The notes under the pieces: generated by a model | Told to the model about the DNA's origin: nothing | Database searches by the model: none | The model's input: only the letters and a program-made list of their open reading frames with translations | Made by a program: the position numbers and the translations under genes | Origin: Ophelia neglecta | Taxonomy: Eukaryota | Reading direction: 5' to 3' | NCBI GenBank assembly: GCA_965285935.1 | Contig: OZ260661.1 | Coordinates: forward strand, 137,392,001 to 137,456,000 | DNA: 64,000 bases | In this document: positions 5,009-63,541 of the stretch, one piece after another | Layout of the letters: every line of letters begins with the position of its first letter | Numbering within the stretch: position 1 is the first letter of the stretch

Positions 5009-6141
5009 TTACTTGGAACAGTCTGACCAGTGCGTTCGCAATGAATAGATTCCGTTACCCTTGGTTCCACTGAAGTACTGCAGGGTGGAAGCTTGCATAC
5101 TGAACCACGTCCCACCTGTGAGAGGCATTCCGCCGTAGGGAGGAACAACTCGGAAGTTGGTCGTCAACTGTCACGACAAAGTACAGTGGTTTTCACATAG
5201 GGGTTATGTATATAAATACATATTGTACTGAGGCTCAAATGTAAAGACGAGTTACCGTTGCAGTAGAAAATTCTTATTTTGGAAGTGCATTTATCATATG
5301 CTATTGATGAATGTCTACCTCAGGCATACTTACCGAAATCTGTGTAACCATGGATGTGTTAAGTCTAGTGGCATCCCAGCCCGTGTATCCACTAATGCTG
5401 GTGATATGTTCCCCAGGCTGAAGGACGAGACCGTAGGTAGACCAACCAACACCGCCAGTGGAAGCAACCCCGACCAGAGGCGCCCAGTAAGCTCCGTACT
5501 TCACCGCCATGCTGGAACAAAATATCATACCCCTACGATGACATATAACGATATTTAATGTGCCCTGTGCAGAAACCACAATGTAATTAAATGCCAAACC
5601 AACTTGGATTAAGTTTGTTTTTATGTTTCAATTATATAGAACACCAGGGCAAATGTTGGGTCATATTCAGAAACACGTTACATCACTGTAAAGAACGTGT
5701 GAGCGCAATTACTTTCGCCTTGGTCGGTTTTTTTTATATATAAACGCCAAAGTCTAGCTGCACTCTTTTGAACTTTAAAGCTCCTTCTTCTAAGTGGCAT
5801 TTTATACGATTTCCAAAGTTGCAGTACTATTTTTTTTCGAATGACATGTACGTAATCATTGTTAAAGAAAAGCGTTGTTACCTATGCCCCATTAATTACT
5901 AACGTACGTCAGAGGCAGTATAGCACCAAAACAAATTACCCCTGTTAGTCAAAAGCCCAGATCTTAGTTTACATTTGGCCTGGTCATAGAGATCGTACAT
6001 ACCCAGTTAAACTGGTAGCGTTGTTGGACATGTATACATGGAAGACAATCTCGGTGATAGGACCATAGCTGCTATACGACATGCCCTGATTGAAAGTCGC
6101 CCCGATGCCTAATGCTCCATACGGTCCTCTTGTGCACTCAA
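5009..6141 (-). CDS. Gene A jacalin-like (beta-prism I / ZG16-like) domain, three exons
   Basis: 6003-6141 '[28 protein letters not shown]'; 5334-5511 '[36 protein letters not shown]'; 5009-5167 '[36 protein letters not shown]'. These match jacalin hallmarks (L.PGE.IT.I.G, TTN..GPYG, FSG, terminal HW). Confidence 0.87.
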
Positions 6142-9100
6142 CTGTCATGGAAAATGCAAGCACATGAAAATAAGACAAGGCATACGCTTAGTGTTAGAGA
6201 CTGACAACGTAAAGAGCCTTCCGAGTGTCAGTCAGATTACATGCTCTTTAAAACATAATGTTTCTTTCCTAATAAAACTAATTTGTTTAAGCTAATGAAT
6301 TTGCCCCCCTTTTGTTATTTGTGCATTGTCTTTGTTAAGCATGTATCTACATATTAAAACGGGAGATAAATATAAACGACTCGGGTATTTTTGATACTGG
6401 AGAATTACTGCAAGCATTTCCTGGATGAAATTTCTCTGAATTTTTTTTTTTTTTTGTATTTTTGTTTGTTTGTCTAGGAATAAACGTCTTATGTGTAGGC
6501 AACGCAGTGTTATATTTCAAAGGTAGATTAGCGTGTCTCCACTTTCGAAAATGTTTTGGATTAAAATATATGTATATAATCTTACTTCCGCCGAGATCCA
6601 GTTCACAAAAGTCTCCCGTGTACCCACTGTAGCAGTTACAAATGTAGCCAGTCGGCGATTTATTGGTGATCTGACAGTAGCCCCGTCCTGGTTCACAGGC
6701 TGTCGCGGAGCATACTCCGGTCATGGTGTCTGGAAAAAACAAGATATATCTTCATTATATGGTTGATATGAATCACAACTGAGTGATTCTAGGCATTGTT
6801 CGCTACATATTGTTCTATATGTTTCTGTTTGATATTTATTTACAGCTTTAAAATTCATGAAAGCTCACGCGCCTATCCCGTATCTTACTTTGATCACAGT
6901 ACTGCCCATAGTAGCCAGGGGAACACAGACAGCTAAATCCCCACTGGTTCGACTGACAGGTGCCGTAGACGCAGGGGCTGTTCTCGCAGCTCGAAAATAC
7001 TATCAATGTATAGAAAAAACGTTAGTTCATACCCGACATACAATACCGCTCAGGTGTTGTGTTAGCATTAGCAACAGGTTGAGACAGGCTCTACGCAAAA
7101 CAATGTTGATTTAAAAGCTTGCTTATTCTAGTTACTGATATTTGTTACTGAGTTTTAGCAATACAGGTGTTTTTACCATAACTTTTGAAGTAGCTATTCT
7201 TACATAACACAATTTGGTTGTTTTTTTTCGGCACAATAATAAAAGAGCCATATAAGCGTTATTTCGATACCGTCGGTGCACGCAAAAGGCCTTAACTTAC
7301 TCTGGTCACAATAGTCCCCACAGTAACCAGGGTTACAGACGCACGAGTAGCCTGAACCTTGAGGGCGACACGCACCATTCACACATGTAGCGGAGTCGCA
7401 AACATTGGTAGCTAGAATCGGAGGATACAGAGTTTAATCATATAAATCTAGTAAACAGGAACATTGTTATAATTTGAATAGTTATAATAATCTAGTTGAT
7501 AAGAATTATTGCTAGAATTTGAATAGTTATAGTACATCATTATTTACACAAAGGTGCCAAAACGCTTCATTGTCAAAATTATGTGTCTGAATAATAATTT
7601 CTGATTGAGAGTATAGAATAAAAGCTAATTCCATTAACGTTTTTTAAACAACTTGAAAGGTTAAAAGTTCATTAATAGACAACAACTAAAATTAGCAGAA
7701 GGAGGTATTTTCTATATCAAAATTCTTATGAAAGGCCTAGATTTACAACTTTATAATGCGTAAGGCGTTAGGATTGAATAAAAGTGAAATTGGTCCTGTA
7801 TGATTGCAAGTGTGGGGAGTATTAAGGCGGGTAGAAACCGAGTGACTAGAAAAAGTAGTGACCACTCCACAGTGTTGTACCAGAGTGGAAGTAATGCTAG
7901 TCCCTCAACAACCCCACCCCCACACTTCTTATCCCAATTGCAACCCGAAAGTCACCCTGTCTTGAAACACTAGAATTTAAGCCCGCAGGTATAGAAATAC
8001 TATATTATTAAGGATCCGGTCTTTATTAAGGATGATTATGTACCCCAGTCTAAAAGAATACCAGTATATTTCGTTCCATTGATTTATTGTCCAAGGGTTT
8101 TAACTCTGCGGGACTCTTTGAATAATGTGGACCAAATAATGTTATACTCCAGGTGACAAGAAAAAATGGTTTCAGGAGCAGAACAACAGTGAATCTGACA
8201 TGTTAGAAGATTATCATTCCAGTACTAAATGCAACAAGAAACCAGCAATCCTTACGTATATCGCAACGGGAGCCGGTGAAGCCAGTGTAACATTGGCATG
8301 TGTATTGGGTCCATAGTCCGTTTAGGTCATATCCCGGTGCGCACCATCCATTCTGACAATAGTAGCTGTCACATTGCCGATAAGCTGGAACAAATAAAGT
8401 CTCGGATTAAATTTATGGGTTCAGGCATTGCTGCACTTTTGGAATATCTTCATGGGATTCGAGGATGCAAAGATATTGTGTGTTGTCAAAAAGAGCCAGT
8501 TAGCGTTTAGTGAGTTAATTCTAACCAACCAATGCTACTTGGATGGCATTTCAATTCTGCTAGCATCTAGGTATTTGCTTATTTTATTTTTCAATGTTGA
8601 ATAAATGTGTCATTATTTGAAATCTAGGCAGCCGATACAGTCATGTGTTATTAATACATATCTGTTCGACTGAAATAGAATCAAATCACAAATACTTCGG
8701 CCATATTCATTTTTTTCTTGAATCAAGCCACTACCACACAAGTGGTGTATAGTTGTACTCACTTTCCATACAAGAAGGGCCGGAATAGCCGTCCGAGCAT
8801 TCACAATAGAAGGCATTCACACGGTCAACACACCTGCCATTAGAGCCACATGGGTTGCTCGCACACTCATCAATTTCTGTTGGAATACCACTCTCTTAGT
8901 TAGTTACAGGTCATTATGGATGCTTCGAAACATAAACACTCTTCTTATCAAAAAAATATTTTGTCAAAACTTTAAATGTGTTCATTTTCCTTAGTCTTAC
9001 CTGTACATCACGAAAGTGGTATGTCGAGTTGCTGGCTCTGATTTGACTTGACATGAATCATTACCGAAAATAATGGTCATCGGGGAAATCACCCCTCAGA

Positions 9101-12100
9101 CTATATTTATCTAGTTATGTACATTATACATAGTTGACTTATTACTAATCTACGTACAGCACAGAATCTACAAACGAGTTCTCAAATTCCTATTTGTTTG
9201 GTTTATAAAAAATGCATTTCATTTCATTTCGTTATTTAATGTTATTCTGGTACTTTAATCCTAGTTTTCACGGACATTTTTTAAATCTCTGTAATTCGTT
9301 GACCAATAACTCTTTTGTTTTGTGTTCTGATACAAATCATGGAACACTAGTGACTACATCTCTTTGCAAGTAGTATATATAGCAAGTTTTGTTTATACTT
9401 AGTGTTATTTGCATTATAAGTTTATTTCATTTTGTGCGCTGGAGATTGATATATTGATGTGTGTGTGAGACTGTGGATTCTAGTACCTGTTGATTACAGA
9501 TCTATTAATGGAGTGTTCTAGAATAATGATTTGGCTTTGTCTGGCGGATATCAACTCTTGTTGTTTCAACCCTGTTTGTATAAAGAAAACATATCCAGTA
9601 GCGAACGATTACACTTGATGAAAATGTATTAAATCGTTAAACGTGATTGAAGGAATCACTAACCGTAGTTACAGTCAGTTCCTGTATAACCCGGGAAGCA
9701 CACGCATCGGTAGGTTCCAGTGGAACAGTAGCCGTTCTTACACTGCAAACAGGAGGCCGGAGCAGTTCCTGGCAAGAAACAGACTAAATGTTATGGTCTT
9801 GAACTTTTCTTACTGATAATAAAGAAATTATTTGATGCCTTAGGCCATATTTTCCGAGTAGCGTCTTCTTGACTAGTTCCAGAGTATCGGATACAGCCAG
9901 ACTTTTCACCGCAGATATCAAGTGTAAATTGTTGAGCTTATAGCTTTTTTGACACATTTGATGAAAAATTAAAGATTGAATTGTGGTAACAAGTTCAAGT
10001 CTGTGATCTATTGAGTGGTTTATTATATCAATGTTTTGATACGGTACGTTTAATATAACTTACCAATCGGTATATTACACAATTGGCCGGTATATCCCTG
10101 ACAGCTATTACAAATGTAACTGTTAGAATAGCTCTGGCAGCCACCGCCGTTCATGCAAGGACTGGCAAGGTCGCAGCCAGCAGCTGAAAGCACAGGAAAG
10201 TAAAACCAAATAAAACCAAAATAGAAATATTACAGGTGCAGATTATCCCACACGTCATTTCGTCACTTTTCAGGTTTGGGCGTTCTCTCCGACCTAAAAG
10301 AGCTTACTAACCAATATCGCAAGAGGATTTATAGTACAACTGGGCAATAAGAATGTGATTCCCAGAAAGGTGGGCAGCTATAAACATACAACAATTGACA
10401 ATGAGGACTATAAAGATTGGTACAGAAATAAATTTGCAAAAATTAGAACTAGATTTGATTTTGAATCTGAATCATTAGGATTGGCTTAAAATCGGATAAT
10501 GAAAAGCAGGCACACATACGGCCTTAAGTGGTGATAGCAGCGCGTTAATGAACAATAATAAATTGAAGGAGATGCGAATTTGTACCTATCTCGCAGTTGG
10601 TTCCGGAGAAACCTGGGGGACAAGTACAGGTGTAATAACCATCGCAGTTCAAACAGGTTCCGCCATTACGACATGGGTAACTCATGCATTCGTCAATATC
10701 TAGAAAATATTAAGGTACAAAGACTAATTTCAATGTGCCAAAAGAAAATGCTAAAAAAAACGAAATATAACTCGCACATTGAGGTATTGGTGTCGGCATG
10801 AGGCCTACACAATTTTTGCATATACTTATATTGTTGAGACAAAAATTGGCTAAGCATATGTAAACAGTGAAGGAAAGTGCTCAGACTCCGGTGTAAAACC
10901 CTTTAACCTTGACCACTAGGAGTTTATTCATAACTACTACTGCGACTAATAACATTGTACAGTGAAACCTGCCTTAAAGACCACCTCTATATTCAGACCA
11001 CCTTCGAATTCAGACCGCCAATAGAAGACCATACCACTCTGTCAATGTTAAATAACCTTTGTAAACAGACCACCTATGTAATTAGACCAGTATGTGCCAG
11101 TCCCTTGGGTGGTCTTAATTCACAGGTAACACTGTACAGTGTAAAGACCGCCTCTATATTCAGACCACCTGGAAATTACGATCACTTATTTGAAAACCCT
11201 ACTGCGTACATTAAATGTAAAATAACCTGTCTTAACAGACCACCCCCATAATCCGACCAGTATGTGCCAGTCTTAATTCACAGGTTTCACTGTATTATGC
11301 AATTCTTTTACCTTAGGCAGTAGTATCTTGATGTCGCAATGTGTTTACTTCCAACACATGCCGACTACAGTCTCAACCTATCCACGTACATGCCGACTGC
11401 ATTGGTTACTTACCAACACACATGCCGACGGCAGTGTAGCACACGGTTCCAGGTCGGCATTCACATCGGTAGCCTCCTGCAGATGGAACGCACACACGTC
11501 CCTGAGATGCATCACACACGCCCACCTGACCCGGGTAACAGACGCTTGTCCCTCCGCCAACTATAAAGATAGTAATAAATTATTGTCAAATGTCACCACT
11601 ATTATAAATATAATATACTTAAATAGTCATCTTGAATTTAGGGCAATTATGTGAACGTATGAGTATAATCGTTTGCCCTCCTCGGTCTGTAAACTTAACG
11701 TTTGGTAAATCACCATAACTCACCATAGGGAGAACACCCCCACACATATCTTATTGATTAATGCATAATTTACCACACATATCTTATTGATTGGTATAGA
11801 ACTTACCAAAGGGAGTACACCCCCACACATATCTTATTGATTGATTCAGAACTTACCATAGGGAGTACACACCCCATACATGTCTTGGAGTCCGTCTCGA
11901 CATTTACATTCCCAGCCGGCCCCATGGGCTGTTGGCGTGCATACACTTCCTGGCTTGTATGCGCATGTGCCAGGGTTGGCACAGGCATCAGCGGCAGTTC
12001 CTGCAAATATAAGTTATTAGTACGTACGAAAGAATGGAGGATACTGTGATTGGTCTACTGCTCACAGCAAGGAAGACGTTTTTATTTACTGAAGTAGTAT

Positions 12101-15100
12101 GGCATGTCCCAAATTTGCGACTTGCAGTTTAGATTACATCTGTCCGAGATGGATATATTAAGGGTTTTATACAAAAAAATAACACTAGACGTAATACTAA
12201 AATACGGACTTGCTTTCGAAAAGTATGAGCTTGGTTGGCCTTCAGCAAATGAATTAATACTACTCGCTTCAGGTTAATACAATTCCATAGTGCTTCCTCA
12301 ACAAGCCAATATGTGCATTATACACTGTAGCTTGGCTGACCAGCTTCCGAAGGAAAACAAATACCGCATTGAATGCTCATTTAATATGTGTTGATCTTAG
12401 CAATTAGTTGTTTTCAATAGGTGTGTATTCAATAATGCAATCCCAAGACGAGGGTGGGCTGACTTACCGATGCAGACGCCGTGAATATCTTGCATGCCAG
12501 GTCGACATTGGCACGTGTAGCTCATATCGCCGACAGTGGGCACGCAGTCAGACCCCGGCTTGTCGCTACAGATGAGCGGATCGCTGCAAACGATCGGCCC
12601 AGAGCCTAGAAGGAAGATTTAAACAAGGTTTCAACAATCAATTGTATTCATCGTATATGTTTTATGTGACTTAAGGCATAATATATGGAAATAACATTCC
12701 TTCTCTGCTCTGTATTTGAGTCCAATAATAAGCCGAGCATTTAACTCCCTTTTGCAAACTGATAAATATATTCCTATGCAAAACGAATAATTTTTTTTGT
12801 CGATTATTCGATTACTCCTGCGGAGCCTGGAGTCCCCAATCTCGGTAATTACTGGGACCGGTTCCTGGAAGCGGTATTAATTCTAACATTAGGCTTAATG
12901 TGCTTGATCAGTCTTAACTTACTAAGGGGGGTCTCTGGATGCTGGATTTGGTCTTAAACCTGGCCAGTTTTGTCTTAAACTTAATCCTAGTCAATGGATT
13001 TAAGTTTCAGAAACATGAATTTACGCCGGTCTCACCTAATATGCATATATATTCCCGAAACTTAAGACCAATTCCAGAAATCGGACCTACGATTTTTCTT
13101 TTTTGTGATAACGTACTTGGAGTATACGGTTTTCCCGACCAGGTACTTTAAAAGTAATATATAATGTTATTTTAGATAAGGCAGTCGTGAAAATGGTTTT
13201 TTTTATAGAACTTCCCTACCAAGTTCTGCTTTTTGTTTGATTGCCCTACCCAAGGGTATATTTGCGCCAGAATCCCTACCCATTGATATTTATTTTGCCC
13301 TAGCCAAAGGTGTGGTTTTGATACCTCCAGCTGCACACCCGTATGCAAATTGTTTGAAAGAGCCCCCCCCCCCCCCCCCCGGGTGTACATGCAATGGACG
13401 CTAGTTACTAGAGACTTACCGTATTCACATTGTATTCCTGCGAAGCCGGGCAGACATTTACATTCGTACGTGTACTCGCCGTTGACACATGTGGCACCAT
13501 TCTGACACGGACTATTTACACAGTCGTCGGAACCTGACACGAACGAATTTTGTACACATGTAAATTATACTATATATCAGGGGTAAAGGGTCTGATGATC
13601 TTTGTACACAGTGCAACTGTGAATTAAATAGTGAAAATTTCAGTTTTAAATCTAAATACAATGCCGTTGATGATAACAGCTCTACACTACCTCGTGCTTT
13701 GTTGTCAAAACGTTAGTGACTAGAAAATAGGCCATTGAGACCGTATTTTATAAACCAAATCTTGTGCTTAGCACGGAGGATGACGGGCATTTGATTTTCC
13801 TGTGTACTAATCACCCAACCGCACAATTTTAACTATTTCCTTTCAAACTTAGGATTCAGACATCAGCTAAAGCTGTTAATTAATTGTTTTAACGTTATTA
13901 AGGCAATGTTTTACCTTTACATATTCCATTGTAATCGGAGAATCCAGTATTACACTGGCAGGATTTCACGCCTCCACCGGGTGAGGAGACACAAGTGGAC
14001 ATGGGTTTGTGCTTACAGTCACTGGAATCCCAACATTGGTCACCTTGGAACGATAAATACACAAGGGATTGGAAAGTATAAGAGCAAGAATCTTCAGCTG
14101 GATACTGCAAATGTCGGCATCCATATTATTAGGTGCTGATCATTGATGGATTTCGGGGGAGGGGAGCTCCGCACCCTACGGGGTGCGGCCTCGTCGCGGG
14201 TGGGGGGGGGGGGCACTCATCAGGAAGAACGCAACCACCTAAACATCAGTTAACATAAACTACTTATTACAGAAAGGACCCATATTGTACATATCGCATT
14301 GCGTTGCCGCGAAATAAAACTATAGGCCCTTTTTTTCTCGCAAATAGCGGTTTAACCCTTATCCAATTGTTTTGAGATGAAATGGCGGAGAGAATTATTT
14401 CTGTTTTGTCACATAATAATTGCTTGCAATATGCGCCATGTTTAATTCATATGTTTTCCTGAAACAGGAAGTGCTTGCATTTACTACACTGGTTATATAA
14501 GGTACAAAAAGGCACTACGTTACTTTTGAATAAACTATCCCATCGATATAATAATAAATATATTAACTATATGTCTGGATTGCGGCCACTATAGATAGAA
14601 GGTGGGTGAACTTACGGACTTTTTCGACACATCTTCTGTCAGGCCGGGAGTAGACCTGCCCGGCTGGGCAGGGAACGCAGGCATACGAGCCCACGAGGTT
14701 CTCACACATCTCCTCGCCACATATGTCAGGAGTCTGTACGCACTCGTTTAAGTCTGCAAAATAGATAGGATTCGCCTGAGGTCTACGTGAAACACGTGTT
14801 TAGTATGGAGGTCAATTGTGAGGTATTAATAACCAACATAAAAATACAGTGAAACCTGTGAATTGAGAACACCCATGCGACTGTAAAATGTTGGTCTTAT
14901 TATGGAGGTGGTCTGTTTAGACAGGTTATTTTATATTGAAAATGTACAGTAGAGTCTTCATATTAGTGGTCTGAATTGCCAGGTGGTCTGATTATAGAGT
15001 TGATCTTTAAGACAGGTTTCACTGTAACTGTGATTAAACTGAGACAGGTAAATTTAACTGCGTAAAGGTGCCAGATAGAATTCACTGTGTAAACAGTGAC

Positions 15101-17419
15101 AGATAGACGTACTCGTGTAAACTGTAACAGTTAGACTTACCTTTGTAAACAGAGACAAATAGACTTACCTGCGTAGACAGTGACAATAAGACTAACCCTC
15201 GTTAACGGAAACAGGTGGACTTACATGTGTAAAAGGTGACTGATAGACTTACCTGTGTATACAGCGACAATTAGACTTACCCTTGTAAATAGTGACATAT
15301 AGACTTACCCGTGTAAACGATGACTGTTAGACTTACCTTTTTAAACAGAGACAAATAGACTAAAACGTGATAACGGAAACATGTAAACTTACATGTGTAA
15401 TAGGTGACTGATAGACTTACCTTTCTTAATAGTGACAATTAGACTTACCCGTGTAAATAGTGACAGATAGACTTACCCGTTTGTCGGTTGTCGGATCCCG
15501 ATGACTCGTCTGTAAAATACAAAATACGCTTTTGGTTCCGTATGTGAGTCATTGTTATATTAGTAATACTAATTGAAACATTCTTATATGAACCCACCAT
15601 TTTCCAAATATGGAAAACGCTAGATAGTAAATTGTTCCAAACTCGAGATACGTAACTTACATTTTTTCGAATTGAAAAGTCCTAATCCAAATACTACTCC
15701 AAGTATCACAGCAAGGATCACTAACAGAAGGCAGCAAGTCAGAGCCCAGCAACATGGTCTTTAATAAACATTGACAATTAAATAGTAATGGTATTCACTA
15801 CCAAATAAACCAAGGCTTTAACGTAATTTTAGTAATGTTGTACACGCGTTCACTCTTTTATTATTTGATTTTATAATGCACACTGTTTTGTTTCAATCTA
15901 ATTTAATTTTCTTTCCATTAGATTTTACCTTACCTTTGCGTATGTACGTATAACTTGATTGATTTTTTAGGGCAAGTCCAATAACTCTTTTTCGTTTGGC
16001 AGTTAATGTTAAAAATACAACAAATTAACCTTAATAAAAGCATGCTAATATAAGTATTAATGAAAATTATTGAATGAAAGGGCCATTTGTAAGTCTCACC
16101 TTGCCCAGCATGGTCTTGGGCCCGGTCTTGGTCGTCTCTCCACCGACACTCCGATAGCTCTGAGAAAAGGGTAATATATGCATAAAACAACGAACGCAGC
16201 GTAATCATACGTTACGCTACACTACTCACAGTTTGTTGTTGATACAGTAACGTGATTTTTATAACATCAACATTGCATAATGTTCAATCTTAATACTTGT
16301 AGACATATAAGGCGATTTATAATCCACCAAATTGTTTCATTTTGCGATAAATAAACACTGTTGAAATTTATGTAAGCAATTCTAAGACAATTTGTGAGAT
16401 CAGGGACTGGAAAATATACTGCTATCTCTTGCAAACCTAGTTTTACCATTTTTCGTCTGTGCAGCACAAACTTCTGTCGTAAATACCTCTTTCTTGATGT
16501 TGTTTCCCTACCGTTCTCTTTGGGTTGACTGCAAAGCTTGGGTCGTTCCACAATGATGTTAGGATCATGCACACATTATTCCTTATGTTTTACGTGTAAT
16601 TATCATTTGTATTAAGACCCTCTGCATATGAACAAACTGCTTTCGATTACATAGGGAAGAGGCAAGCATATTTGACCTAATTTGCAGGTTTCCCTTCCCT
16701 CACACATTATTCAAACGACCGATACATGCCTAAGATCCCAGGTTGCATTTTCTGATAAATATGAATCAAATAATTTGTTTTCAATAGTTACCTTGGCTTT
16801 CTGTCAATCACCCTGGAAGACAAATCAAATATGTACAATGTTTAATGGAATATAAATGGAAAAATAGAGACGCCCGGACACACTAATTGTGGTTGCAGTG
16901 CATAACAAATGCCCCCCCCCCCCCCTCCTTTCCGCCCTTTAATTGTACTTTGATGGAATCAGAATAAAATATGGAAGAGCATCAAAACATTAATCTCAAA
17001 CTTGAATGGAATAAACGTGCCTACCCCTTTTCACCCATGATATGTAGTTTTTTTTAACGTGAGCCTGTCAGTTGTAAGAAGTTCTACTTTCGAGTAAAAA
17101 AGCGATACAAAAGTTATATGCCCAATAAAAACTCAGTCAGATGCTCCGAAAGATGCTCCGAAAGTCATGGAGCGAATATTTTAAAAACCGTAATATATTT
17201 TCTTGACCATATTGCCACAGATTGTCGTGATTTAATGTTTAATTGGTAAACGGGTATATACATTTCCTATAACAGGTATTATAAGTACACATTTCAAAAT
17301 TAAGCCTATATCCTAATTCACGAAATGGAACCCCAAATAAATGTTTTAACTCCCAATGTTACCGACATAGGACGAAATACTTACTCGGAGCGCCCTACTG
17401 GCCTGCCATTTTGCCTCAT
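5009..17419 (-). CDS. Gene A: type II transmembrane protein with 14 EGF/EB-like modules and a C-terminal jacalin-like lectin domain (~840 aa, 23 coding exons)
   Basis: Exons in transcript order, all GT-AG with an open frame: 17385-17419, 16792-16812, 16487-16528, 16100-16159, 15661-15758 (TM), 15477-15509, 14616-14753, 13915-14043, 13420-13533, 12468-12605, 11857-12000, 11414-11560, 10586-10699, 10064-10183, 9664-9768, 8763-8876, 8256-8384, 7301-7411, 6889-6999, 6586-6729, 6003-6141, 5334-5511, 5009-5167 (TAA). A possible further first exon ends ATGCG|GTAAG at 18258-18262. The two smallest N-terminal microexons are the least certain. Confidence 0.88.
6586..14753 (-). CDS. Gene A EGF-like repeat region: 14 phase-1 symmetric exons, including calcium-binding-type EGF and EB-like modules
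   Basis: Calcium-binding-type examples: 14616-14753 [26 protein letters not shown], 10586-10699 [37 protein letters not shown], 8763-8876 [29 protein letters not shown]-like C..KP.S.C modules lie at 13915-14043, 12468-12605 and 11857-12000. Confidence 0.92.
10958..11294. mobile_element. Two abutting copies of a Tc1/mariner-pogo-type MITE (family 1)
   Basis: TA-CAGTGAAACCTG...CAGGT(A/T)(A/T)CACTG-TA at 10958-11136, plus a second, left-truncated copy at 11135-11294. Internal AGACCACC repeats. Confidence 0.85.
11714..11886 (-). repeat. ~50-bp tandem copies of an exon 3' end plus donor site
   Basis: AACTTACCA(T/A)AGGGAGTACACCCCCACACATATCTT-like units at ~11717, ~11767 (partial), ~11800 and the real exon end at ~11850. 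Confidence 0.88.
12854..13087. mobile_element. Family 2 MITE (~230 bp, GGGCCCGGTTTC-type TIR, PIF/Harbinger-like)
   Basis: GGGACCGGTTCCTGGAA...TTCCAGAAATCGGACC; internal CTGGATTTGGTCTTAA is shared with the copies at 39095 and 40868. Confidence 0.7.
13190..13383. repeat. Dispersed repeat ending in poly-C/CCCGGG, related to the sequence at ~205-280
   Basis: CAGCTGCACACC(C/T)GTATGCAAA..TTTGAAA occurs at both ~13328 and ~243. Confidence 0.5.
14845..15026. mobile_element. Family 1 MITE
   Basis: TACAGTGAAACCTGT...ACAGGTTTCACTGTA, TA flanks, ~180 bp. Confidence 0.88.
15027..15485 (-). repeat. 28-bp minisatellite (~16 units), each unit carrying a copy of the GTAAGT splice donor
   Basis: ACTTAC recurs in a 28-bp register at 15135, 15163, 15219, 15247, 15275, 15303, 15331, 15387, 15415, 15443 and 15471 (the real donor). 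Confidence 0.92.
15661..15758 (-). CDS. Gene A transmembrane (signal-anchor) exon
   Basis: 98-nt exon, phase 2 to 1, encoding [32 protein letters not shown]. It is preceded by basic [13 protein letters not shown] and has AG/GTAAGT boundaries. Confidence 0.88.
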
Positions 17420-28625: not shown

Positions 28626-28749
28626 AAAATATTGTTTACTCTACCAATGTATATTCCTTGTCTGTATATTTTCTAGTTTTATAAACCAATTTCATCTTTA
28701 TTATAAAACATCTACATAGCCAGTTCTTCATAGAGGACGATCGTATTTC

Positions 28750-48819: not shown

Positions 48820-49058
48820 CTTTATTGTAGAATGATTTACCCCAGACTGGGGTGTTTTATCGTAGAATACTTTTCTGCAGACTGGAGGGTTTGTCGTTGA
48901 ATTCGTTACTCCGGAACGGGCAGTTTATCGTGAATGGTTTACTGAAGACTGGGGCTGTTGATAGTCGATGCTTAACATTAGATCGAGGGTTTATCGTAGA
49001 ATACTTTACTCCAGACTGGGACGTTTATCTTCGAATGCTTTACTCCAGACTGGGGTGC
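48820..49058 (+). repeat. ~35-bp degenerate minisatellite, ~7 copies
   Basis: Consensus approximately TTTATCGTAGAATACTTTACTCCAGACTGGGGXG. Confidence 0.85.
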
Positions 49059-49496
49059 ATTTGGCAATAGATTTAAAAATCATGTAAAACAATAAAACGC
49101 GAAATTAATGACATCTGCCAAATTCGCTTATAATTCCAGCCCACATATACGATTGGCCTACGTGCCCACATTTTCCATAGGACCCCGGTCCACAATACAG
49201 CTCGTAGACGAAATGATACGTCGAAAAGTAAGGGCTGAAATATGACTCCCGAAATTAAACTTCAGACAAAACTTGCTTGGTTTACAGTATAGGCACGCAT
49301 TACTGGAGCACCAGGGACAACGTTGATGCTACATACTGATGGTGCTCCTGGGTGAAGAAGCCTCATTACATAAATAAATTAGTGAATATATAAATCGAAA
49401 CAAGGAATACTTCAATATCAATAAATATAGAAATAGCGTTATAGTGGCTTATATATGGTATATGTATGTTTAATGAAATGCATGCACCATATCTAT

Positions 49497-49676
49497 TACA
49501 CGGAAACATGTGAATCGAGACCACCCGAGGGACAGGAAATGTTGGTCTGATTTTTGATGTGGTTTGTTTAGAGCGGTCATTTTAAATTAATCTCTACAGT
49601 TTGCTGATCAAATTAGTGGTCTGAATTAACAGGTTGTCTGAATGTAGAGGTGATCTTTAGGTCAGGTTTGACAGTA
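49497..49676. mobile_element. Family 1 MITE, degenerate
   Basis: Internal sequence is homologous to the 41938 copy (GAGACCACCCGAGGGAC..TTAGTGGTCTGAATT..); TIRs are decayed. Confidence 0.75.
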
Positions 49677-53159: not shown

Positions 53160-56100
53160 CTGGAAGAATATTGAAGCCACTTTACGCGGTTAATACCCTG
53201 CTCAATCTTTATGTGAGTCAATGGGCATCCACGAGAACACATGTCTTTATTATCTTGTAACCGATCTTTTCTAATAGTGCTATTATCGTTATTTTCTAGT
53301 CATAGTCATAGTCATAGAACCCTCGGCTACGCCTCGGGCGCTATGACCATGGCGGGCTGCTAATAATTTATGTCGGGCCACTGATATAGCGTAACGCCCT
53401 GCAAAATCATGTTTTTGGTATATTAGTTCTTAATGATTTCGGACAGATGTAATGGACAATTCTTGAATAATTATTCGGTATTGTCGACCGGGTATCTATT
53501 CCTTGTTTTTAACAGTTAACTTTGAAGTTAATGTTATTTGTATACATAAGTTTTAGACTAACAAAGCAACACATTGTTTTGTTTTTCGAAACACTAAGTA
53601 ATATCTAGTATTTACGTAGGATATACAATCGTCATACAAGATAATGACTTGGTGAAGGGTTTGGTTTGGTTCGGAATATAATAATGGGATAGTTTAAGGA
53701 ACAAGACTGACTGGTAATTATGCATTATGCTACAGAAGTCTTTATAATAGCAGCTTCTTGAGTAAGCTCCTGATTAATGAGTACTTACTTGGAAATTGGC
53801 AGTCCTGCCCGTTGTATCCAGCGTCACAATTACAGACATAGTCACATCCCGCTGCCTGGCAGGTTCCATGCGTGCTACAAAGTACACTGACACACGGCTG
53901 GCAAACTGTCAATATAGTTACAATATTACCCTGAATGATTTGTTTCACCTAAGGTTTTGGCACATGTAAGGAGTTAATCGTTCCCCATGCACTGCCTAAT
54001 ATATTTCTTCTAAAGATTTACTTCATGCCAGATAAAATTTAAAAATACGAATATAAAATTAAGGCCTGCTCTTCATTTTTACGAGCTTTGTGTAGTCCAA
54101 TCAACGCGAAAAGGAATGAATAATAATTTTATCCACCTTTGGCTTATGTAGGCGCTTTTCACTAATGGTATTGATATACTTCGGTCCATTAATATATACA
54201 TATATACATATATATACATATATATCGATATTCGACCATAATCATTATGCGTTACTATTGTGCAACTATGTGTATAATAAATTAATGATGATATAATTCC
54301 TATGTGTGCATTTTTTGATATTGGCAAAATTATCTGCATGTATTCGAAAAAACCTTTGGACGTGTGTTGAACAGTTATCATCGTCTTGGTACAAAATACT
54401 ATTTGAAATAACAATGAATGTGACGTTTGATGGAATCATGTGTCTGCATGACCACATATACTTAAAACATATCTTACCTGTAAACTGGCAGTCACTCCCG
54501 TAAAAGCCGGCATTACATTTGCAAGTATACTGGCAGTCAACGGGCTCACAAGTGCCCTCGTTATTGCACAGCACACCGTTACACGGTTCGCAGGCTGAAG
54601 CAGAATGACAAATTATGTAATAGCAATCACTAAGCTTTGTCAGTAAGTCTTATGTATGTACCTGGCGTTAAGTGCACGTGATTTTTCTGAGGGCCTCGCT
54701 ATAGAAATGGCTTATGATTTAAATGATTTATTTCGAATATAACAAAAATTCAGTCAATTTAAAATTAACATTGCAACATTAATAATAAATTAGTGTATAT
54801 CAAGTCTATCACTGTGTGATTGTTGGTTGGGTGGTGATGGAGGAGGAAATGGGTGCGCGTGGGCACAATCATTTGTTTAGTTATCACGGTATGTCACACT
54901 GCTAATTCCTGGGTTTTCTCATATAGGTAGCGTATTATACCCAGTCGTACGATTTAATCAACAGTCTCTAATAATTCAGCTTCTTTATGTATATTATGCT
55001 TCTATGGTATCTAAAACACAAACATTCTCTTATTGTGCTAACCATTGCTGCAGATGAAAGATCAGAAAATTGTTGCGTCAGGTTTTAAAATTGTACCTAG
55101 TTGGCAGTCATCTCCTATGTAGCCTATGAAACATGTGCAAACGTAGTTTGTCGGGCCATCGGGAGAGCAGGTACCGTGATTTGAGCAGGTCACGCCTTCA
55201 CAGGGATCTAAACGAGATAGACGATGCAACAATTAATAAACTTTCCTTAAAATGAGACATAGAGTATTCTTGGAACATTTTATGCTATATTTTTATTCTT
55301 CTGCTAATATAAATTTGATACTGGTATGTTGAACAAAAATATAGTTTGAAAGTATAAGTCCCTTATAAAAGACCCACCCACACTTTTTTTTTTAACTAGA
55401 ATAAGACAATTTTTACATCTTTTTGACTGTTGTTGACGCATAAAACCAGCCGTTTGAAATATCCCTAACTAGTTTTGTGTTTCTTTTATAATCATTGTTA
55501 CAAAACCTACTTGGAGGATCAGGAGTTTGGCAGTCTGTGCCTTGAAATCCTTCATTGCATATACACTTGTAGGTTGTCCCGGCAAGCTGACAGGTCCCTT
55601 GACCAGAGCAGGTCACCTCGAAACATTCATCTGGAAATACAAAACAATCTAAATTCAAACCTCAAGAACATGCGGATTAATATCTGTGCTTAAGCTTCTA
55701 AAAAGGAATGCGCACGTCTAGATACACTCAATATTATTTTCATTTAAGCGTGTACATTCACTTAATATGATTTTAATAAAATTTTATTTTATTAATTACA
55801 TTACAAGCCTTTTCACACATTCTGACCCAAAATTGCAAAAAAAGTTTTTTTAACCTTTTTCACAATCATCTCCGGAGAAGGGGACATCGCAGACACACTG
55901 GTATGTCAAACCCATAGCATTACAGACGCCTCTGCTAGAACATAACACACCAAGGCAAGGATCTGGAATATAATTGCACGTCTTAATGTAACTTAAAGTG
56001 TTATTGCGTAACACCCCCCGCCCCACTCACCTCCCATCTCCCATCATCATAACCGCTTTACTATTGACTTCATTAATAGTACATATGTGTGCGAGTATGC

Positions 56101-57889
56101 GCGCAGAAAAAGTTTTCTTTTTCTTTATTGTTCTTCCGATGATCAGGCGCCAAAAACATATTTTACATAACAAATATACAGATATGTATGCATACGGTGA
56201 TCATTCTTAAAGCAAATATATTATACACTACACAACATTGCTATTATCAAAGGAACTCACCGAAATTTTCACAATATCTTCCACTGTAACCTAGATCGCA
56301 AGCACAGAAGTAGGTTTCCCCAGCTGGCACACATGTGCTCTGGCCTTCAACACACTGGTTACCGACACATGTATCTTTTGCTACAAAGAAAGAAATACAC
56401 AAGTTTTTAAACCAGTATACTTACGCATTTTATGTGGATAATCGTGAACATTTTCTGTAATCATTTTTCCGACATAGCTCTTTTTTATAGGATAATCCCT
56501 GTCGAAAATTCTTGAATGACGACATATCATGTCGATTATATATCTTAAAAAGAAATCGTAGAATGTTCCTTCTTGTTAGCATTTGTTGGTTTTAATTCGT
56601 TACAACTAATTCACAAGTGATATTGAACCTTTAAAGGTTTGTAAGCTTATATTATTTAAGCACCTTAAAACTGTGTTGTTATTACCATTTTGGCAGAATT
56701 CGCCTTCATATCCTGGGATACAGGTACATGTGTATGAGGTTCCCACAGGTACACAGGTCCCCTTGTTTATCACACATTGATTCCCGTCACAGGGGTCGGG
56801 GACTGTAGGGCGAATGAGCAAAAGAGCATGCATACTAACAGTTAGAACGATTTTAATATAATCAGATCGGCACAAGTAAGTGAATTTCAACTTTTATCAT
56901 TTTTATTCTGAATTCTAACCAAAACATCATTCATTGTACAAGTTATAGGGTAGGAACATATAGGCTAGAGACATCTTGTATGTGAGTGGGTGGGGGGGGG
57001 GGCAGTCTTTGAAATAATATTATGTACAAGGACGATTTGGTCATTGTGTTAAAATATAAAACAAGAGAAAGCAATATGCTTTTACCCGAGAGCAAAACAC
57101 TATTTTTGTGTTGCCTAAGCGACAATACTATTTTCTTTGGGGGGGGGGGGGGAGTAAAAAATACATAGCCTTCGTTCACCCGTCACTCCCCCCCCCCCCC
57201 CCCCCCGCCTCTTCCCAAATCCCATCACACAACCAAAACAAATGTCTGATTCATTTTAAAGCGTTACACACAGAAACAAAGATTAAACTGACCGACACCA
57301 ATTTATGCCTTTTTATTGGTGGTAAAACATTTTAATTTACTTTCCATTATAAAGCATACATCAATCGACATAACAGCAGGGCAATCTGACATATAAATTA
57401 GCGGTACCTGTTTCACAGTTTGTCCCGGCAAACCCAGGCAAACATTGACAAACGTAACCGGTTGGAGATGCCACACATATCCCTTGGTTCGCTATACACG
57501 TGTTCTCGAAACACGGATCGGAACCTACAAAAAAACAATCAGTTGATCAGTTAATCAATCGAATTTTATTAAAGTTCACTTGACTATATCGCACGCAGAG
57601 TATCCCGACCCCCAGTCAGCCCTTGTGATTGTGGGATGGATGTATAGGCAGAGAGCGTCTGCTGACACAATCTCTCTGATCTCATTAAGATTCTGTATTC
57701 CCACTACAGTAGTATTGAAAAAGTATAGCATATTGTAATAATATAACTTATCTATGTGGTGTCCTGTATTAGGCATATTATACTGATATGACTTGTCACC
57801 TACTCTTGTTAATATTAATTGTTGTATATAGGGACATGCGAGTATGCAGGCGAGAGGGGGATATGTACATTGGAGCGGGTGTGATGTGC

Positions 57890-57920
<31 letters not shown>

Positions 57921-60900
57921 TGAGTGTTAAATATATGTATGTATATGTGTGTATATGTGAGTATATATGTCTATGCATGCCTTGCTCTCCAGAAAGTGGA
58001 GGATAATAAAACAATAATAATGATAAAGTCATTTCTGAATTGAAAAATGTACTATAGTGTCACTTAGATAATCGTAAAGAATTTTGATATATAATTTACT
58101 TAAAACAATCTATACAATTTAGCACCATATTTGGGGTCAATGGGTTGAAATTATACACGGGCACGGATAGCTGAACAAGATTCAATCAGAATCGTCACTA
58201 ACGCAACCAGCCATTTAATGAGTGCCTTTTTGCCAAGTATATTCAAGTATATATAGTCATAGTCAGAGTCATATAAGATATTCAGAATGTGATTTCGTAT
58301 TTTAAATACAAAATCTCCCAGATGTGAATCAAGCAATCCAGAGAAGCGCAACACGTGGAGCTCATCCCTTACACTTTTTATACAACGGTGACAAAGTCTA
58401 CATTCAGGAGGATTGCGTGGGCGAATATAACGGCCAGTCTCAATTTCCAGCTGTCGGCCCCCGAGTCTAAATTGAGCCACAGCGAGCCGATTACTAAACT
58501 TAATATGTAAATGTTTTCAAGATTGAAAGATTTTTTTGTAAAGGTAATAGCTGCGTAACAGAGTTAGAATATTTCGGGAATATTTCGAAATACTCGAGAA
58601 GCTTTAAAGCAAATCCATATTACGGAGATGTTCGGTACGATAATTATCAGCTGGGACATAGGTATTTTTGGAATTTTGCTCTTTAATTTCGCGCAGAAGG
58701 CAATCTTATTTTGGTGCATAAAGTAGGCCTATTACGCGCACACAATCATAAGTAATTTTGTTCATAGTTAAATTCGTTGTAAGGGGTAGCCTTAATTGGC
58801 TCAAGTTGTGTCAGAAAAATGCCAAGTACTCCACGAAATTAAACTATGTGCGAAATTTCGTCTTTTTTGCAAAGAAAATCAATCACTACATATATATTTA
58901 AAGCTGAACGATCGTGACGCAAACATACGCTAAATGGATTCTGAGAAATTGACTTGAAAAGAACTTTTGATTCACCATATAAAAAGTCTTAATTGTCTTA
59001 AGATGGATACCTTATATATAGCCCGGCAGATAAGTGAATATTTTTGGGAGAATCTTTCAAATGATGATACAAGCACCATATTTGGTCCAGATACACATCT
59101 GGGACTACTTTTTCAAAAAAGCCCGTTAGCCACCTGAAAAATCAAAATGGCGGCCATTTTGGATTTTCATTTTTGTTAACAATTTGTCAATTCCACTTCA
59201 ACATGGCTCAAAGTATATATTTTGAAATAAAAAACATACAAATAGGACAATTATACCACATAATATTCAGATAATAGTAATTTTGTTATGAAATTGGCAG
59301 CCATCTTGGAAAATAGCAGCCATTTTGAATTTTTGAGTGGCTAACGGCTTTTTTCATAAAAACAACCTCGAGAGAGTGCACATACCAAATTTGGTGCTCG
59401 TATCACTATTTGAAAGATTATATAGCTTATCTGCCGGGCTAATAGTAGTCAATGTATTGGAAAGAAAATTAGAGGACTTCGATGACTACCCATGTTCTTA
59501 GCGGTGTGTCGGATACCTGAATAGTTTATACCCATCCCAATTCTTAATCGATATTGCCTGATTTGTTCAACCTTAATCAGGTTCGAAGGGATTTTACATT
59601 GCAGTATTTGCCACTGGATCGGCCAAAGGGCCGTTATTGGTGACGTTGTGCCTCAAACACGTTAGAGTATAATCCCATACCAAAAACATGAGTGGATACA
59701 CGGTAGACACAGAAAAACCATTTATCAAGAATGCTCCGATGAATCGGTTCGAAATCAATTTAAGTTTTCAATTATGTTAGTTATATAGGTTTATGCACTG
59801 TTTGGAAGCAGCGGGTGAATTTAATTATGTATGTGGGCCGGAGATTTGTGGTTCCATGGTGAATTCGGGCAAATTTAAAGAACTATTTTGATTGGTGATT
59901 TGACTTGCTTTCAGGGGATCCTCTCCCGTTTTTTTTAACATATTGCCTACTTACTCATCTCACAGTTCTGCCCGTAGTAGTTTGCCGGACATTCACAACG
60001 GTATCCCCAGGTCTTCTCGAAGCAAGTTCCTTTTAAACAGGGGCTGCTTTCGCATGCATTGTTCAAAGCTGAAAATATCAATCAAAATTGTGAATGTAGG
60101 AACTATCAATTATTACATGACACAGTATTGTTGACTATGGTAATTTTCTACATCATTGAATATTGATAGTTTTAGCCAAATACGAAATTGGCACCATGTG
60201 AAATTGTTGTTATAAATAGTGAATGCTTATGTCTAATGATTTTAGGTCAAATAAATAATGTGACTTACGGGTCTCACAGTATGTCCCTTCGAAGCCTATG
60301 TGACAGGTACAGGTAAACCCGTTTGGGGTGTCAGTACAGTCTCCCTGCTGACACAGATTGTCCGCACACGTCAGAATGATTGCTTAAAGCAAATGATATC
60401 ATATTAAATTGGAACCTGTGAATTAAGACCATCCGAAGGTGTGGAAAATATTATTCTGGTCATTAGTTAAGACAGGTCATTCCATTACGTTGAAAGTGTA
60501 CAATATGGTCTTCTTGTTAGTGATCTGAATTCAACTGGTGGTCTAAATCTAGCTATTTTCTTTAAGGGGAAAAATTTAAAAACTGTGAGTAATATTATAT
60601 TCAATCCCTCGTTCGTTTCAAACCTACACACGGAGGCTAGACTTATAAATAACAAATAATAAATAGTGTGAAACAAAATGGCATCAGTGCTTTGTTGCAG
60701 AGTTAAATTCAGTGAAATGAATGTTTAACATATCACAACATATCTGGATAAACTCGCGAAAGTTGTGTGTCTGAACAGTCATGACCAATGTATCACACAT
60801 TGGCTTTCAAAAGCCACAACACACAATAATAATAGCTTACGTAATTCACAGTACGTTCCAGTGAAACCGTCAAAGCAAGAACAGGAGAAGCCTGTACCGG

Positions 60901-63541
60901 CTGTAACACAATTTCCATTCTCACAGGTTGTGGCGGTACAGCCGCTATTATCGGCTGCAATTTACAAAGTGGGGTAAGAAATGTATGTCATCCTATCTTC
61001 CTGTTAGAAACATTTATATTAGACAATTCTTTTAATAATGTGGTACAAATTACTAAGATATCCGAAAGAAACAATTGATGGAGAGTTCATGAAATAGATT
61101 AAAAATGTGTACGCCTCAGCCTTCAGTTATACGCCTTACCATTCGGTTATACGCCTCAAGTTAAGAAATGGGTCTGGTAAACGGTGGTAATTCATCGCAG
61201 TTCTTATATTGTTTACACATTACATCCTATAATACTCGACAGGTTAAAACATTGTTGATTTTTCTTACGTATTTCGCATTGGGAACCTGTCCAATCCGGG
61301 TAGCAGGTACACGAGTGGCCTGTCCCCACTGCTGTGCAGTAGCCGTTCTCACAGGGATTAATACGACAGTCAATATACGGGGCTAGGTGGGAAATCAGCC
61401 ATTACTTGATACTTGAACATTAAAAAGATTGATCTCACCATTGTTCAAAAAAGGCCATTTAGTAATGTACGCCCCAAACCAAATAGTTTGATTATACGTA
61501 GGTTGGCGTCCTTTGTAAAACATGCATTCCAAGAATAGTTAATATTTGCTTCCTTACGTTTTTAATTCAAAGGTTAATATTGGACAGCTGAAAGAAAAGC
61601 AGGAATGTTTGATTTGTTGATTTTCAAAACGTACGTATTTGACAATAAGGCCCGGAATAGGACGGGTAACAGTCACATGTCCAGTCTGCCCCGGTGCCAA
61701 CACATCTCCCGTACTGACAGGCGTCAAGCTGACAGGGTTGGCCGACGGCTACACAACACAAGTGTTTTAATCCATGATCGTTTATATACCAACAATATAA
61801 CAACAATATGCAGTATTTATTAAATATAAATTTTTCAACTGAATGTATAAATACTGTTATTGATAGCAGTGAACAGTGTCCATTTCAATGAAGAGCTTTT
61901 CAATAGGGAACAGCATTTAAATGCCCATACATCGAGCTTATACTGGTATCTACTAGTCTGCAGGTAATTGCCTTTGTCACCTAATGCAGACAGTAGGTGG
62001 ACAAATTGGTGGAGTCTGCTCTTTGAGAATACACGGACAATGTGTAAAATAGCTCTGTTCAGATTGAAAAGGTAGCATATTTGTCTGATATTACATGTAC
62101 AATTTAGGACCTACTAATCATTTCAGAATATATGATAATTTATTGTGAATTTCATGACATCATATGATATGGACAGTGTATACACAACACAATTCTTGAC
62201 CAGCAACGCCAAAAAAGTTCGCCATAGCAATAGTATTTTGTGGTTAGTAAAATATTCTATAGCAGTTCACTGCCAATTAATAATGACTTTAACTGTATGA
62301 TAGTGGTACTAGAAAATACATACGTATGTTACATTTGTATCCTCGATAGCCTGTGTCGCATTGACACATGGACATACTACTGTCACACACCCCGTTGATA
62401 CAATGGTTCTCATCACAACTCTGCCAGCCTATTTAAATAGAATGTACATCAACTTGAATGAAGTGTTGATTATTTAACAAAAACTTAAGGCTCGATAAAG
62501 GCTGGTTGATACGATATTTGTTTAGCTCAAGTACTACATGGGAGTCGTTTTCAGATGAAAACTATCGATATTTGTTTTCATTCGTGGATTACAAGATCAT
62601 TCATTGCAGGTAGATGTGTATTGGGCTGCGACTGGCATTTCTGATAATTTCGGACGGACTATTAACTTCTAGGTTAATTATTTAGCATTGTCCGGCGGGT
62701 ACCTACACCCGTTGTTTGTCCATAGTAGTAGTGATGTTAAAAGGCGATCATTGACTGAATATATCCTACACCCCAAAACTGTATTATAAAAGTATAATCA
62801 TAATCTATGTCTAGAAATAATTAGCAGTAGGGAACTTAATCTATGCCTGAAGTTAGCAATAAAGGACAGTTCTGGGGCCTTTATTTCTTTTCCCGTCATA
62901 GCGAAAAAGTACTTCGTGTCTTATATTTCCGCATTAAGCAGTTCTTTTCGGAAAAATACGAATCTTCCTTCTACACAAACATACTTAGAAAAAGGGCAGA
63001 CTACTTCTGCACCACTTGTTTTTGCAAACCTGGTTGTTTCAACTTAAGACAGGTTAAACTGGATTCACTTTAACAACCGATATATGATATATTATACACT
63101 GTCACCGATCACTAGAAATGGCATCTGCTGAAATTGAGTCATTTAAGAAGTCAATCAATATAATCGAAAGGTTAACGCAACACACAGCTAGATAGGGACA
63201 TTTAAACCACTGGTAATACGCATCACCAGTAACAGTTGCCCCCCCCCCCCCCCCCAGCCCACAAAAGAAAAAGAAATCTAAAAAATGTCATTCCAGTTAT
63301 ACCAAAGACAGTGGGTGTTTAATATGGGACTTATACATTCAGACTTAATACCGATTTATTGGAAACATGTTGTTTTACAGCAAACGTTTTGTGTCTAAGT
63401 CGCCTCTTGTCGAAAGCTTCTTACCTAATTCGCAGAAGTCACCAGTCCAGCCTGGAAAGCAGTCCACACACTTGTACACGCCTGAAACACTCTGGCAATC
63501 GCCGCCATTTAAACATTGTTCACCTGTATTACAAGAGCCGC
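51657..63541 (-). CDS. Gene C (5' part outside window): 15 EGF-like modules followed by a C-terminal jacalin-like domain
   Basis: Exons in transcript order: 63425-63541, 62324-62428, 61635-61748, 61269-61382, 60841-60954, 60269-60382, 59955-60068, 57408-57524, 56686-56802, 56261-56380, 55855-55962, 55511-55630, 55097-55207, 54478-54594, 53789-53905, then lectin exons 53009-53159, 52575-52752, 51657-51809 (TAA). All GT-AG with an open frame. TM exons are presumed to lie beyond 64000 by paralogy. Confidence 0.9.
52098..52320. mobile_element. Family 2 MITE
   Basis: GGTCTGGTTTCTGGAAG...CTTAAGACCTCTTCCAGAAACCGGGCCC. Confidence 0.65.
58020..58562 (-). mobile_element. 3' fragment of a non-LTR retrotransposon ORF2 (C-terminal Cys-His region) inside a gene C intron
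   Basis: 'LRSYYLYK..' then 'AQFRLGGRQLEIETGRYIRPRNPPECRLCHRC..RDELHVL', typical of the LINE ORF2 C-terminus; disrupted by a stop. Confidence 0.8.
59019..59441. mobile_element. Palindromic non-autonomous DNA transposon with TAG..CTA termini and 3-bp TSD (Academ-like)
   Basis: ATA|TAGCCCGGCAGATAAG...CTTATCTGCCGGGCTA|ATA. Long imperfect arms include AGCACCATATTTGG/CCAAATTTGGTGCT, CCGTTAGCCAC/GTGGCTAACGG and AAAATGGC/GCCATTTT. Confidence 0.82.
60411..60550. mobile_element. Family 1 MITE, partial
   Basis: GAACCTGTGAATTAAGACCA...TTAGTGATCTGAATT...GGTGGTCT; right TIR is missing. Confidence 0.7.

Follow-up and report, generated by a model that had tools for sequence, protein, structure and literature searches.

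The window analyzed here, a 64,000-nt stretch of the Ophelia neglecta genome (C1:137392001-137456000), probably holds three members of a tandemly expanded invertebrate gene family, which we refer to as genes A, B, and C. The predicted products of this family combine a transmembrane (TM) segment, a stalk of EGF modules, and a C-terminal jacalin-like domain, hereafter the head, and the sequence supports this TM-EGFn-jacalin order as real at the gene-model level. The complete order, with the head encoded by three exons (J1, J2, and J3), was found in genes A and C, in four genes of the flanks (Z, D, E, and F), and at a distant locus (C1:16.79 Mb). Coordinates are given as positions in the window, and extended coordinates carry the same numbering into the flanks. 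The genome searched comprised 762 Mb.

Jacalin-like head and EGF stalk

The head exons of genes A and C all lie on the minus strand. In gene A, J1 (6003..6141) runs from phase 1 to phase 2, J2 (5334..5511) runs from phase 2 to phase 0, and J3 (5009..5167) starts in phase 0 and closes with a C-terminal cysteine and the stop codon. Gene C has the same arrangement, with J1 at 53009..53159 (phase 1 to 2), J2 at 52575..52752 (phase 2 to 0), and J3 at 51657..51809, which again ends in a cysteine followed by a stop codon. The J2 exon of each gene weakly matches Pfam Jacalin. These models reproduce the three-exon jacalin end that an earlier note on this DNA had described for A and C, including the phases 1/2/0 and a middle exon of 178 nt in both. 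The phase-1 entry of J1 equals the donor phase of the last EGF exon in A and in C. Moreover, the open frame of gene C J1 contains no methionine upstream of its conserved cysteine; this exon therefore cannot start a protein and needs an upstream exon, and the first phase-1 donor met upstream of it, at a distance of 629 nt, belongs to the last EGF exon. The spliced head comprises ~155 residues, about the size of one ZG16p domain. Compared exon by exon, the heads of A and C are 24-38% identical, within a range of 24-69% between family paralogs.

The head exons were searched one by one against databases, both as single-exon queries and as exon profiles. A J2 profile built from eight middle exons of the genome (59 positions) and run against a database of 1.84 billion proteins (1.84e9) gave 36 matches, with best E values of 1e-13 to 1e-10, and the three matches that were checked proved to be PF01419 proteins with Pfam Jacalin E values down to 1e-223. 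A two-sequence J2 profile made from A and C alone recovered the PF01419 loci of the genome itself, and a search of gene C J2 against the ESM Atlas returned a weak Jacalin hint. Among solved structures, the J1 profile matched residues 12-33 of PPL3 (E 0.006), the J2 profile matched residues 46-83 of ZG16p (E 1e-6), and the J3 profile matched residues 87-113 of jacalin-type lectins (E 0.02-0.05). The three matches are collinear along beta-prism I lectins, so that reciprocal profile searches and collinearity both place the head in PF01419. On these profiles the head is established as jacalin-like, and its fold is predicted to be a beta-prism I. Within J1, a conserved C-x-x-G-P-x-G stands where canonical members have GG-x-GG, in a part of the exon that lies outside the residue-level alignments to solved structures. 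All members have a cysteine at the start of J1 and another at the very C-terminus, with the stop codon immediately behind it or at most a few codons further on. The N- and C-terminal ends of a beta-prism I lie side by side, and this terminal pair therefore suggests a disulfide that would staple the N-terminus of the head to its C-terminus.

A six-frame scan of the window for the strict six-cysteine EGF pattern gave 34 matches, all of which fall inside genes A, B, and C and on the strand expected for each, in blocks at 6.6-14.0 kb (minus), 40.5-47.7 kb (plus), and 55.1-62.4 kb (minus). A looser cysteine scan raised the module counts to 14 in A (minus), 12 in B (plus), and 15 in C (minus), 41 in total; the strict and looser scans together thus recovered the earlier count of one EGF module per phase-1 exon in numbers of 14, 12, and 15. 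Nearly all modules have a phase-1 acceptor with a pyrimidine tract just 5′ of the first cysteine and a phase-1 donor, often a perfect GTAAGT, just 3′ of the last. Ten sampled exons all matched a Pfam model of the EGF type (EGF, EGF_CA, or EGF_Teneurin), the majority scoring above the curated cut-off, with top scores of 39.5, 35.2, and 29.8 bits, respectively. Both the six-cysteine pattern and profile scores above the cut-off of EGF-like domains (PF00008 and PF07645) were therefore found.

The gene A array spans 6586..14753 on the minus strand, with one module per phase-1 exon; by splice and cysteine scanning, its 14 exons start at 14753, 14043, 13533, 12605, 12000, 11560, 10699, 10183, 9768, 8876, 8384, 7411, 6999, and 6729. 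Three of them begin in the calcium-binding style (DxNEC/DIDEC/EIDEC), and two pass the EGF_CA cut-off. The 12 exons of gene B, also delimited by cysteine and splice scanning, occupy 40130..47665 on the plus strand, and the 15 exons of gene C occupy 53789..63541 on the minus strand. The last two modules of gene C are of an eight-cysteine, CxPC type, and the final one scores 29.8 bits against EGF_Teneurin, for which the cut-off is 24.3. The arrays of B and C are collinear module by module, with 53% amino-acid identity, a pS of 0.80, and a pN of 0.31. We give no dN/dS for this pair because the synonymous sites are saturated. The comparison shows that B and C are old duplicates whose EGF exons have been under long-term purifying selection.

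Membrane exon and predicted topology

A 98-nt TM exon shared by A and B had been noted before, and we found it at 15661..15758 (minus) in A and at 38377..38474 (plus) in B. The gene A exon enters in phase 2, leaves in phase 1, and encodes 27 uncharged residues along with juxtamembrane cysteine pairs. It is followed by a 33-nt juxtamembrane stalk exon (15477..15509, minus, phase 1 to 1) and then by a first EGF exon of the calcium-binding type, with all phases compatible. The gene B exon likewise runs from phase 2 to phase 1 and fits the phase-2 end of the first coding exon (34339..34541, plus), which begins with an ATG and encodes 67 hydrophilic, tyrosine-rich residues that include HSHSPH. This ATG, at 34339, has an acceptor immediately 5′ of it and lies in a CTACC context; a Pfam scan of the gene B tail exon gave no match. 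A flank scan placed the TM exon of gene C just outside the window, at extended positions 64576-64670 on the minus strand.

In the eight genes in which it was located, the TM segment is alone on its own exon of 89-98 nt and contains 24-27 uncharged residues. It is preceded by 17-70 hydrophilic residues (~70 in B, only ~20 in D and Z) and in most of the eight genes has a GLGLGL-like C-terminal end. A first coding exon with an ATG and a HSHGHSHG-like motif was found in six of the seven cluster genes, with ACC before the ATG in four and an acceptor immediately ahead of such ACC ATG starts; its extended positions are ~-19150 in Z, ~65950 in C, 95118..95069 in D, ~108800 in E, and ~129400 in F. The histidine-rich motifs, interspersed with tyrosine, read HSHGHSHG, HGHSHA...HGHSHG, HSHGGHSH, HHSHSHG...HGHAH, and, in B, HSHSPH, and this part of the tail could be a metal-binding or signaling element. 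The cysteine pairs lie at the N-terminal, predicted cytoplasmic edge of the helix, where, by analogy, they would be candidate palmitoylation sites.

EGF modules are rich in disulfides and need the oxidizing extracellular side, and the hydrophobic regions of signal peptides are typically 7-15 residues long. Because the EGF modules should be extracellular and the hydrophobic span is over-long for a cleavable signal, we favor a predicted type II (N-in/C-out) signal anchor over a cleaved signal peptide. The earlier note had ascribed to A and B a hydrophilic N-terminus and no signal peptide; the hydrophilic N-terminus was found in B, in the form of the 67-residue exon, and the first coding exon of A was not located.

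Weak candidates for that exon are a 60-nt exon at ~16100-16159 and an ATG at 17419. The 60-nt candidate (16100-16159, minus) is phase 2 on both sides and repeats the first 15-17 nt of the TM exon of gene A, the two stretches compared being AAGACCATGCTGGGC and AGACCATGTTGCTGGGC. A duplicated exon start is one possible explanation, and a pseudo-exon is another. On the other side of the TM exon, a minisatellite with a 28/84-bp period (15035-15477) adjoins the 33-nt exon, as had been reported earlier, and carries a GTAAGT-like donor copy in each unit.

The family beyond the window

The earlier note had described three paralogs and proposed a scan of the flanking DNA for more. A genome-wide search with the J2 and J3 profiles, followed by examination of the flanks, enlarged the family to at least 10 loci. 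The cluster itself contains at least seven genes in ~150 kb around the window, six of which have TM, EGF, and jacalin parts. The four further genes near the window are Z, a plus-strand gene upstream, and three minus-strand genes downstream (D, E, and F); in each of them the TM exon measures 89-95 nt, keeps the family phases, and is followed by ~7 to 15 EGF exons and then by J1, J2, J3, and a stop codon. At least three more EGF-jacalin loci were found elsewhere in the genome. One of these, at C1:16.79-16.81 Mb and thus 120 Mb from the cluster, combines a TM exon of 95 nt with at least 18 EGF exons and three J exons. The other two, examined for their EGF and J exons, are on C5, at 89.59-89.62 Mb (minus) and 89.835-89.865 Mb (plus), and in each an array of at least 18 EGF exons leads to family-type J exons. 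The C5 arrays include at least 17 near-identical EGF exons of the CEGTHDCDDNAACGNTEGS... type, spaced ~0.5-1.2 kb and mostly ~1.1 kb apart, and these stalks look like the result of very recent exon amplification or of concerted evolution. Of the claim that the family is a lineage-specific expansion, the expansion was borne out by the number of loci, and the divergence of B from C marks the family as old.

In total, EGF exons followed by jacalin exons on one strand were seen at nine loci, some of them on another chromosome. The intron between J2 and J3 is common to the EGF-linked heads, whereas free-standing ZG16-like loci have that stretch on a single exon. This shared intron points to one origin of the fused architecture, to judge from the exon structures compared. 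The genome holds at least 36 other Pfam Jacalin loci (on C1, C2, C5, C7, C9, and C12), several of them in tandem groups, and in eight of eight free-standing loci sampled the C-terminal cysteine was present. These loci give the impression of a large ZG16-like repertoire that exists alongside the membrane family.

Gene B differs from the other genes of the window at its 3′ end. Its last EGF exon retains a GTAAGG donor, beyond which a stop codon is reached after three codons of the intron. No jacalin exons of gene B were detected by tblastn and open reading frame (ORF) scans of 47.7-51.6 kb, the 4 kb before the 3′ end of gene C. DNA contigs from three sequencing runs of a single sample cover 47.4-53.2 kb continuously, and the missing head is therefore not an assembly hole. 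Gene B is an old, still constrained paralog without a head in the DNA examined.

Two observations concern variation among the head exons. In gene F, J2 and J3 occur twice with identical translation, 2.9 kb apart (extended 114860-115501 and 117753-118393), and the two copies flank a 100-N gap at 115703-115802; the doubling reflects either duplication in the very recent past or an artifact of assembly. In gene C, contigs of one DNA sample showed eight single-base differences in the jacalin exons (52632-53156), six of which change the amino acid (N>T, a double hit in one proline codon, E>A, D>N, and K>Q). The changes fall mostly where the paralogs vary, and 2.2 kb of adjoining intergenic DNA had 0-7 differences. 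They could reflect allelic diversity or reads from a paralog. Elsewhere in the window, upstream of gene A, two overlapping ORFs on the plus strand at 1015-1909, the second of which matches RVT_1 (E 7e-11), mark a retroelement fragment.

Alternative readings, proposed role, and related systems

Several points weigh against reading the family as type II membrane proteins with a jacalin-like lectin head. The exon models, and with them the junctions, are predicted from splice signals and frames in genomic DNA. The Pfam Jacalin gathering score of 22 bits is set for the whole domain, and read exon by exon, the single exons fall slightly below it: J2 of gene A scored 20.3 and 18.3 bits and J2 of gene C 17.0 bits, over profile positions 22-89 and 47-89, and J1 or J3 alone gave no match as single-exon queries. 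Scans of gene A for motifs and splice sites yielded only weak candidates for its first coding exon. The GLGLGLGL at the C-terminal end of the TM span includes small residues that could in principle suit signal peptidase. Finally, the head has lost the residue on which classical mannose binding depends. GXXXD in the binding loop is the common sugar-binding motif of mannose-binding jacalin-related lectins, and in ZG16p the D151N exchange at the Asp of this motif abolishes mannose binding (PMC4059138). This column holds Asp in six of eight sampled canonical ZG16-like loci of the genome (GGLLD and similar) and aligns to GYYLD/GDYLD of the Parkia lectin. In the cluster, the Asp is replaced in every head, by Tyr in A, Thr in C, Ile in F and D, Val in E, and Gln in Z. 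Its loss makes binding of mannose or glucose in the canonical pocket unlikely, as far as the motif predicts. The earlier description of a jacalin lectin head thus stands for its jacalin-like part, on the strength of the profiles; "lectin" is here a fold label, and sugar binding is not supported.

One alternative is that the jacalin exons are instead separate small ZG16-like genes lying downstream of EGF-only membrane genes. Such an arrangement would account for gene B, which has no jacalin exons in the scanned DNA, and free-standing copies are numerous among the other jacalin loci of the genome, of which there are at least 36. It is nonetheless very improbable: J1 enters in the phase of the last EGF donor in A and C, the J1 frame of gene C offers no methionine ahead of its conserved cysteine, and no signal-peptide exon was seen in the 444-629-nt gap between the last EGF exon and J1. 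Jacalin exons follow EGF exons on a single strand at nine loci, not all of which are on the same chromosome, and EGF-linked heads share a J2/J3 intron that free-standing ZG16-like loci lack. If EGF and jacalin exons do belong to one protein, that protein could still be secreted, with the hydrophobic segment acting as a signal peptide that is cleaved off and whose n-region is uncommonly long; the product would then be a soluble EGF-jacalin protein of mucus, hemolymph, or shell matrix. The GLGLGLGL end would offer small residues at possible -1/-3 positions, only ~20 residues precede the segment in D and Z, and PPL3, to which J1 has its best structural match, is a secreted lectin of pearl shell. 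Secretion is documented for ZG16 and PPL3, the known animal jacalins (PMC8878817). We consider this improbable, given that the uncharged run of 24-27 residues in eight of eight genes has the length of a bilayer, compared with 7-15 for a typical h-region, that gene B has ~70 residues ahead of it, and that the preceding peptide, with its HSHGHSHG-like motif and cysteine pairs, is kept in six of seven genes, which would be unexpected for a discarded n-region.

A further alternative accepts the architecture and assigns it another role, namely, that of a shed ectodomain in biomineralization or in matrix or mucus assembly rather than that of a recognition receptor. Its attraction lies again in PPL3, the match of J1, which has been reported to act in shell mineralization (PMC8878817), and in the EGF-containing shell matrix proteins known in molluscs (PMC9290575); the loss of the mannose-binding Asp also speaks against a classical lectin. 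We regard this role as quite improbable: no protease site was identified, and tandem expansion, strongly diverged heads, and variable stalk length are more typical of recognition families. The amino-acid-changing variants in the head loops of gene C point the same way, although, coming from the reads of one sample, they are anecdotal.

Returning to the membrane-anchored reading, which we regard as probable, the predicted protein would begin with a short cytoplasmic peptide rich in histidine and tyrosine and continue into a signal-anchor helix of 24-27 uncharged residues, encoded by its own 89-98-nt exon and bearing cysteine pairs on the cytoplasmic side. Outside the cell, a rod of 7 to >18 EGF modules would follow, with each module encoded by its own phase-1 exon, and a ZG16-like jacalin (beta-prism I) domain from three exons, with the stop codon near its terminal cysteine, would form the C-terminus. 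Instead of holding mannose in the canonical pocket, the diverged head may bind another ligand; the number of EGF modules would set its reach, and the Tyr/His tail could couple it to signaling or endocytosis. A role of the family in surface recognition or adhesion is putative. More tentatively still, and with the odds clearly against it, the family might represent a new class of animal surface receptor in which a jacalin head without the canonical sugar pocket, diversified and possibly polymorphic, is carried on a variable, exon-shuffled EGF rod with a His/Tyr tail and recognizes non-self, gametes, or self, making it a functional counterpart, built from unrelated parts, of the type II C-type lectin receptor clusters.

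In animals, the jacalin fold is known from small lectins that are secreted (ZG16, ZG16B, and PPL3) and from pore-formers, of which it is the targeting part. If true, a membrane-anchored, tandemly expanded jacalin on an EGF stalk would be a new receptor architecture for invertebrate recognition, and the beta-prism I fold would have been recruited as a receptor head after losing its classical mannose site. The family is also a compact case of exon shuffling, with each module on its own symmetric phase-1 exon and stalks of 7 to >18 modules.

The earlier note had recognized no named family with the order TM-EGFn-jacalin, and we likewise found none, either in the literature on jacalin or ZG16 combined with EGF, transmembrane, invertebrate, or mollusc, or among the database proteins scanned. 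No protein with both EGF and jacalin occurred among the J2-profile database matches that were domain-scanned, a weak negative because the profile has only 59 positions. Single-stretch matches were limited to four short proteins, and a sample of the longer matches consisted of jacalin proteins with multiple repeats and of false positives with repetitive domains (SpaA, fn3, and Sushi). Two matches considered as orthologs were rejected: P0033 comes from a metagenome contig of 38 kb on which no EGF exons precede it, and P0010 consists of a single J2-like exon on a contig of 1.2 kb. A limpet paper was set aside as a prior report, since jacalin merely serves there as a staining reagent.

Of the known animal jacalins, ZG16/ZG16B are close in the head, ZG16p being the best solved-structure match of J2 and about equal to the head in size. 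They are small, secreted, single-domain proteins, however, whereas the family here places its jacalin domain behind a TM anchor and 7 to >18 EGF modules, and the position of ZG16p Asp151 in GXXXD is not Asp in the cluster heads (PMC4059138). PPL3 of Pteria penguin, the best match of J1, is likewise secreted, has ~142 residues, and lacks an EGF stalk and a membrane anchor; it was the only lophotrochozoan protein among the structural matches listed for a rotifer jacalin-like lectin (PMC8878817). Fusions of an animal jacalin domain to another module, aerolysin, are found in natterin-like proteins and the lamprey LPFP (PMC5605768). These share the principle of fusion with the present family but are soluble pore-formers with an N-terminal jacalin domain, whereas the jacalin domain here is C-terminal and there is no aerolysin exon; membership in the natterin-like group was rejected on the grounds that in every member the stop codon comes directly, or a few codons, after the C-terminal cysteine of J3.

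The architecture of the stalk has a parallel in the teneurins. The earlier note had held that multi-EGF membrane receptors are type I, a generalization that does not survive, because teneurins are type II single-pass proteins with EGF repeats directly outside the membrane (PMC6422961). The family here is predicted to share this topology, and the last EGF exon of gene C scores as EGF_Teneurin; the family has no teneurin intracellular domain, NHL, YD-repeat, or toxin-like C-terminus. Teneurin membership was rejected, with the gene B tail giving no Pfam match and the frame after the last EGF exon entering the jacalin exons and then a stop codon.

In outline, the family would work like the type II C-type lectin receptors. 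DC-SIGN, CD23, langerin, and collectin-12 have a type II anchor, an extended neck, a C-terminal lectin domain, and clustered genes. The predicted proteins described here would share with them an N-in anchor, a stalk, a C-terminal fold of a sugar-binding type, tyrosine motifs in the tail, and gene clustering. The parts themselves differ, a coiled-coil or collagen neck and a calcium-dependent C-type domain being matched here by an EGF rod and a predicted beta-prism I. We rate the family as a putative receptor of the same stalked, type II, lectin-fold kind, built from different modules.

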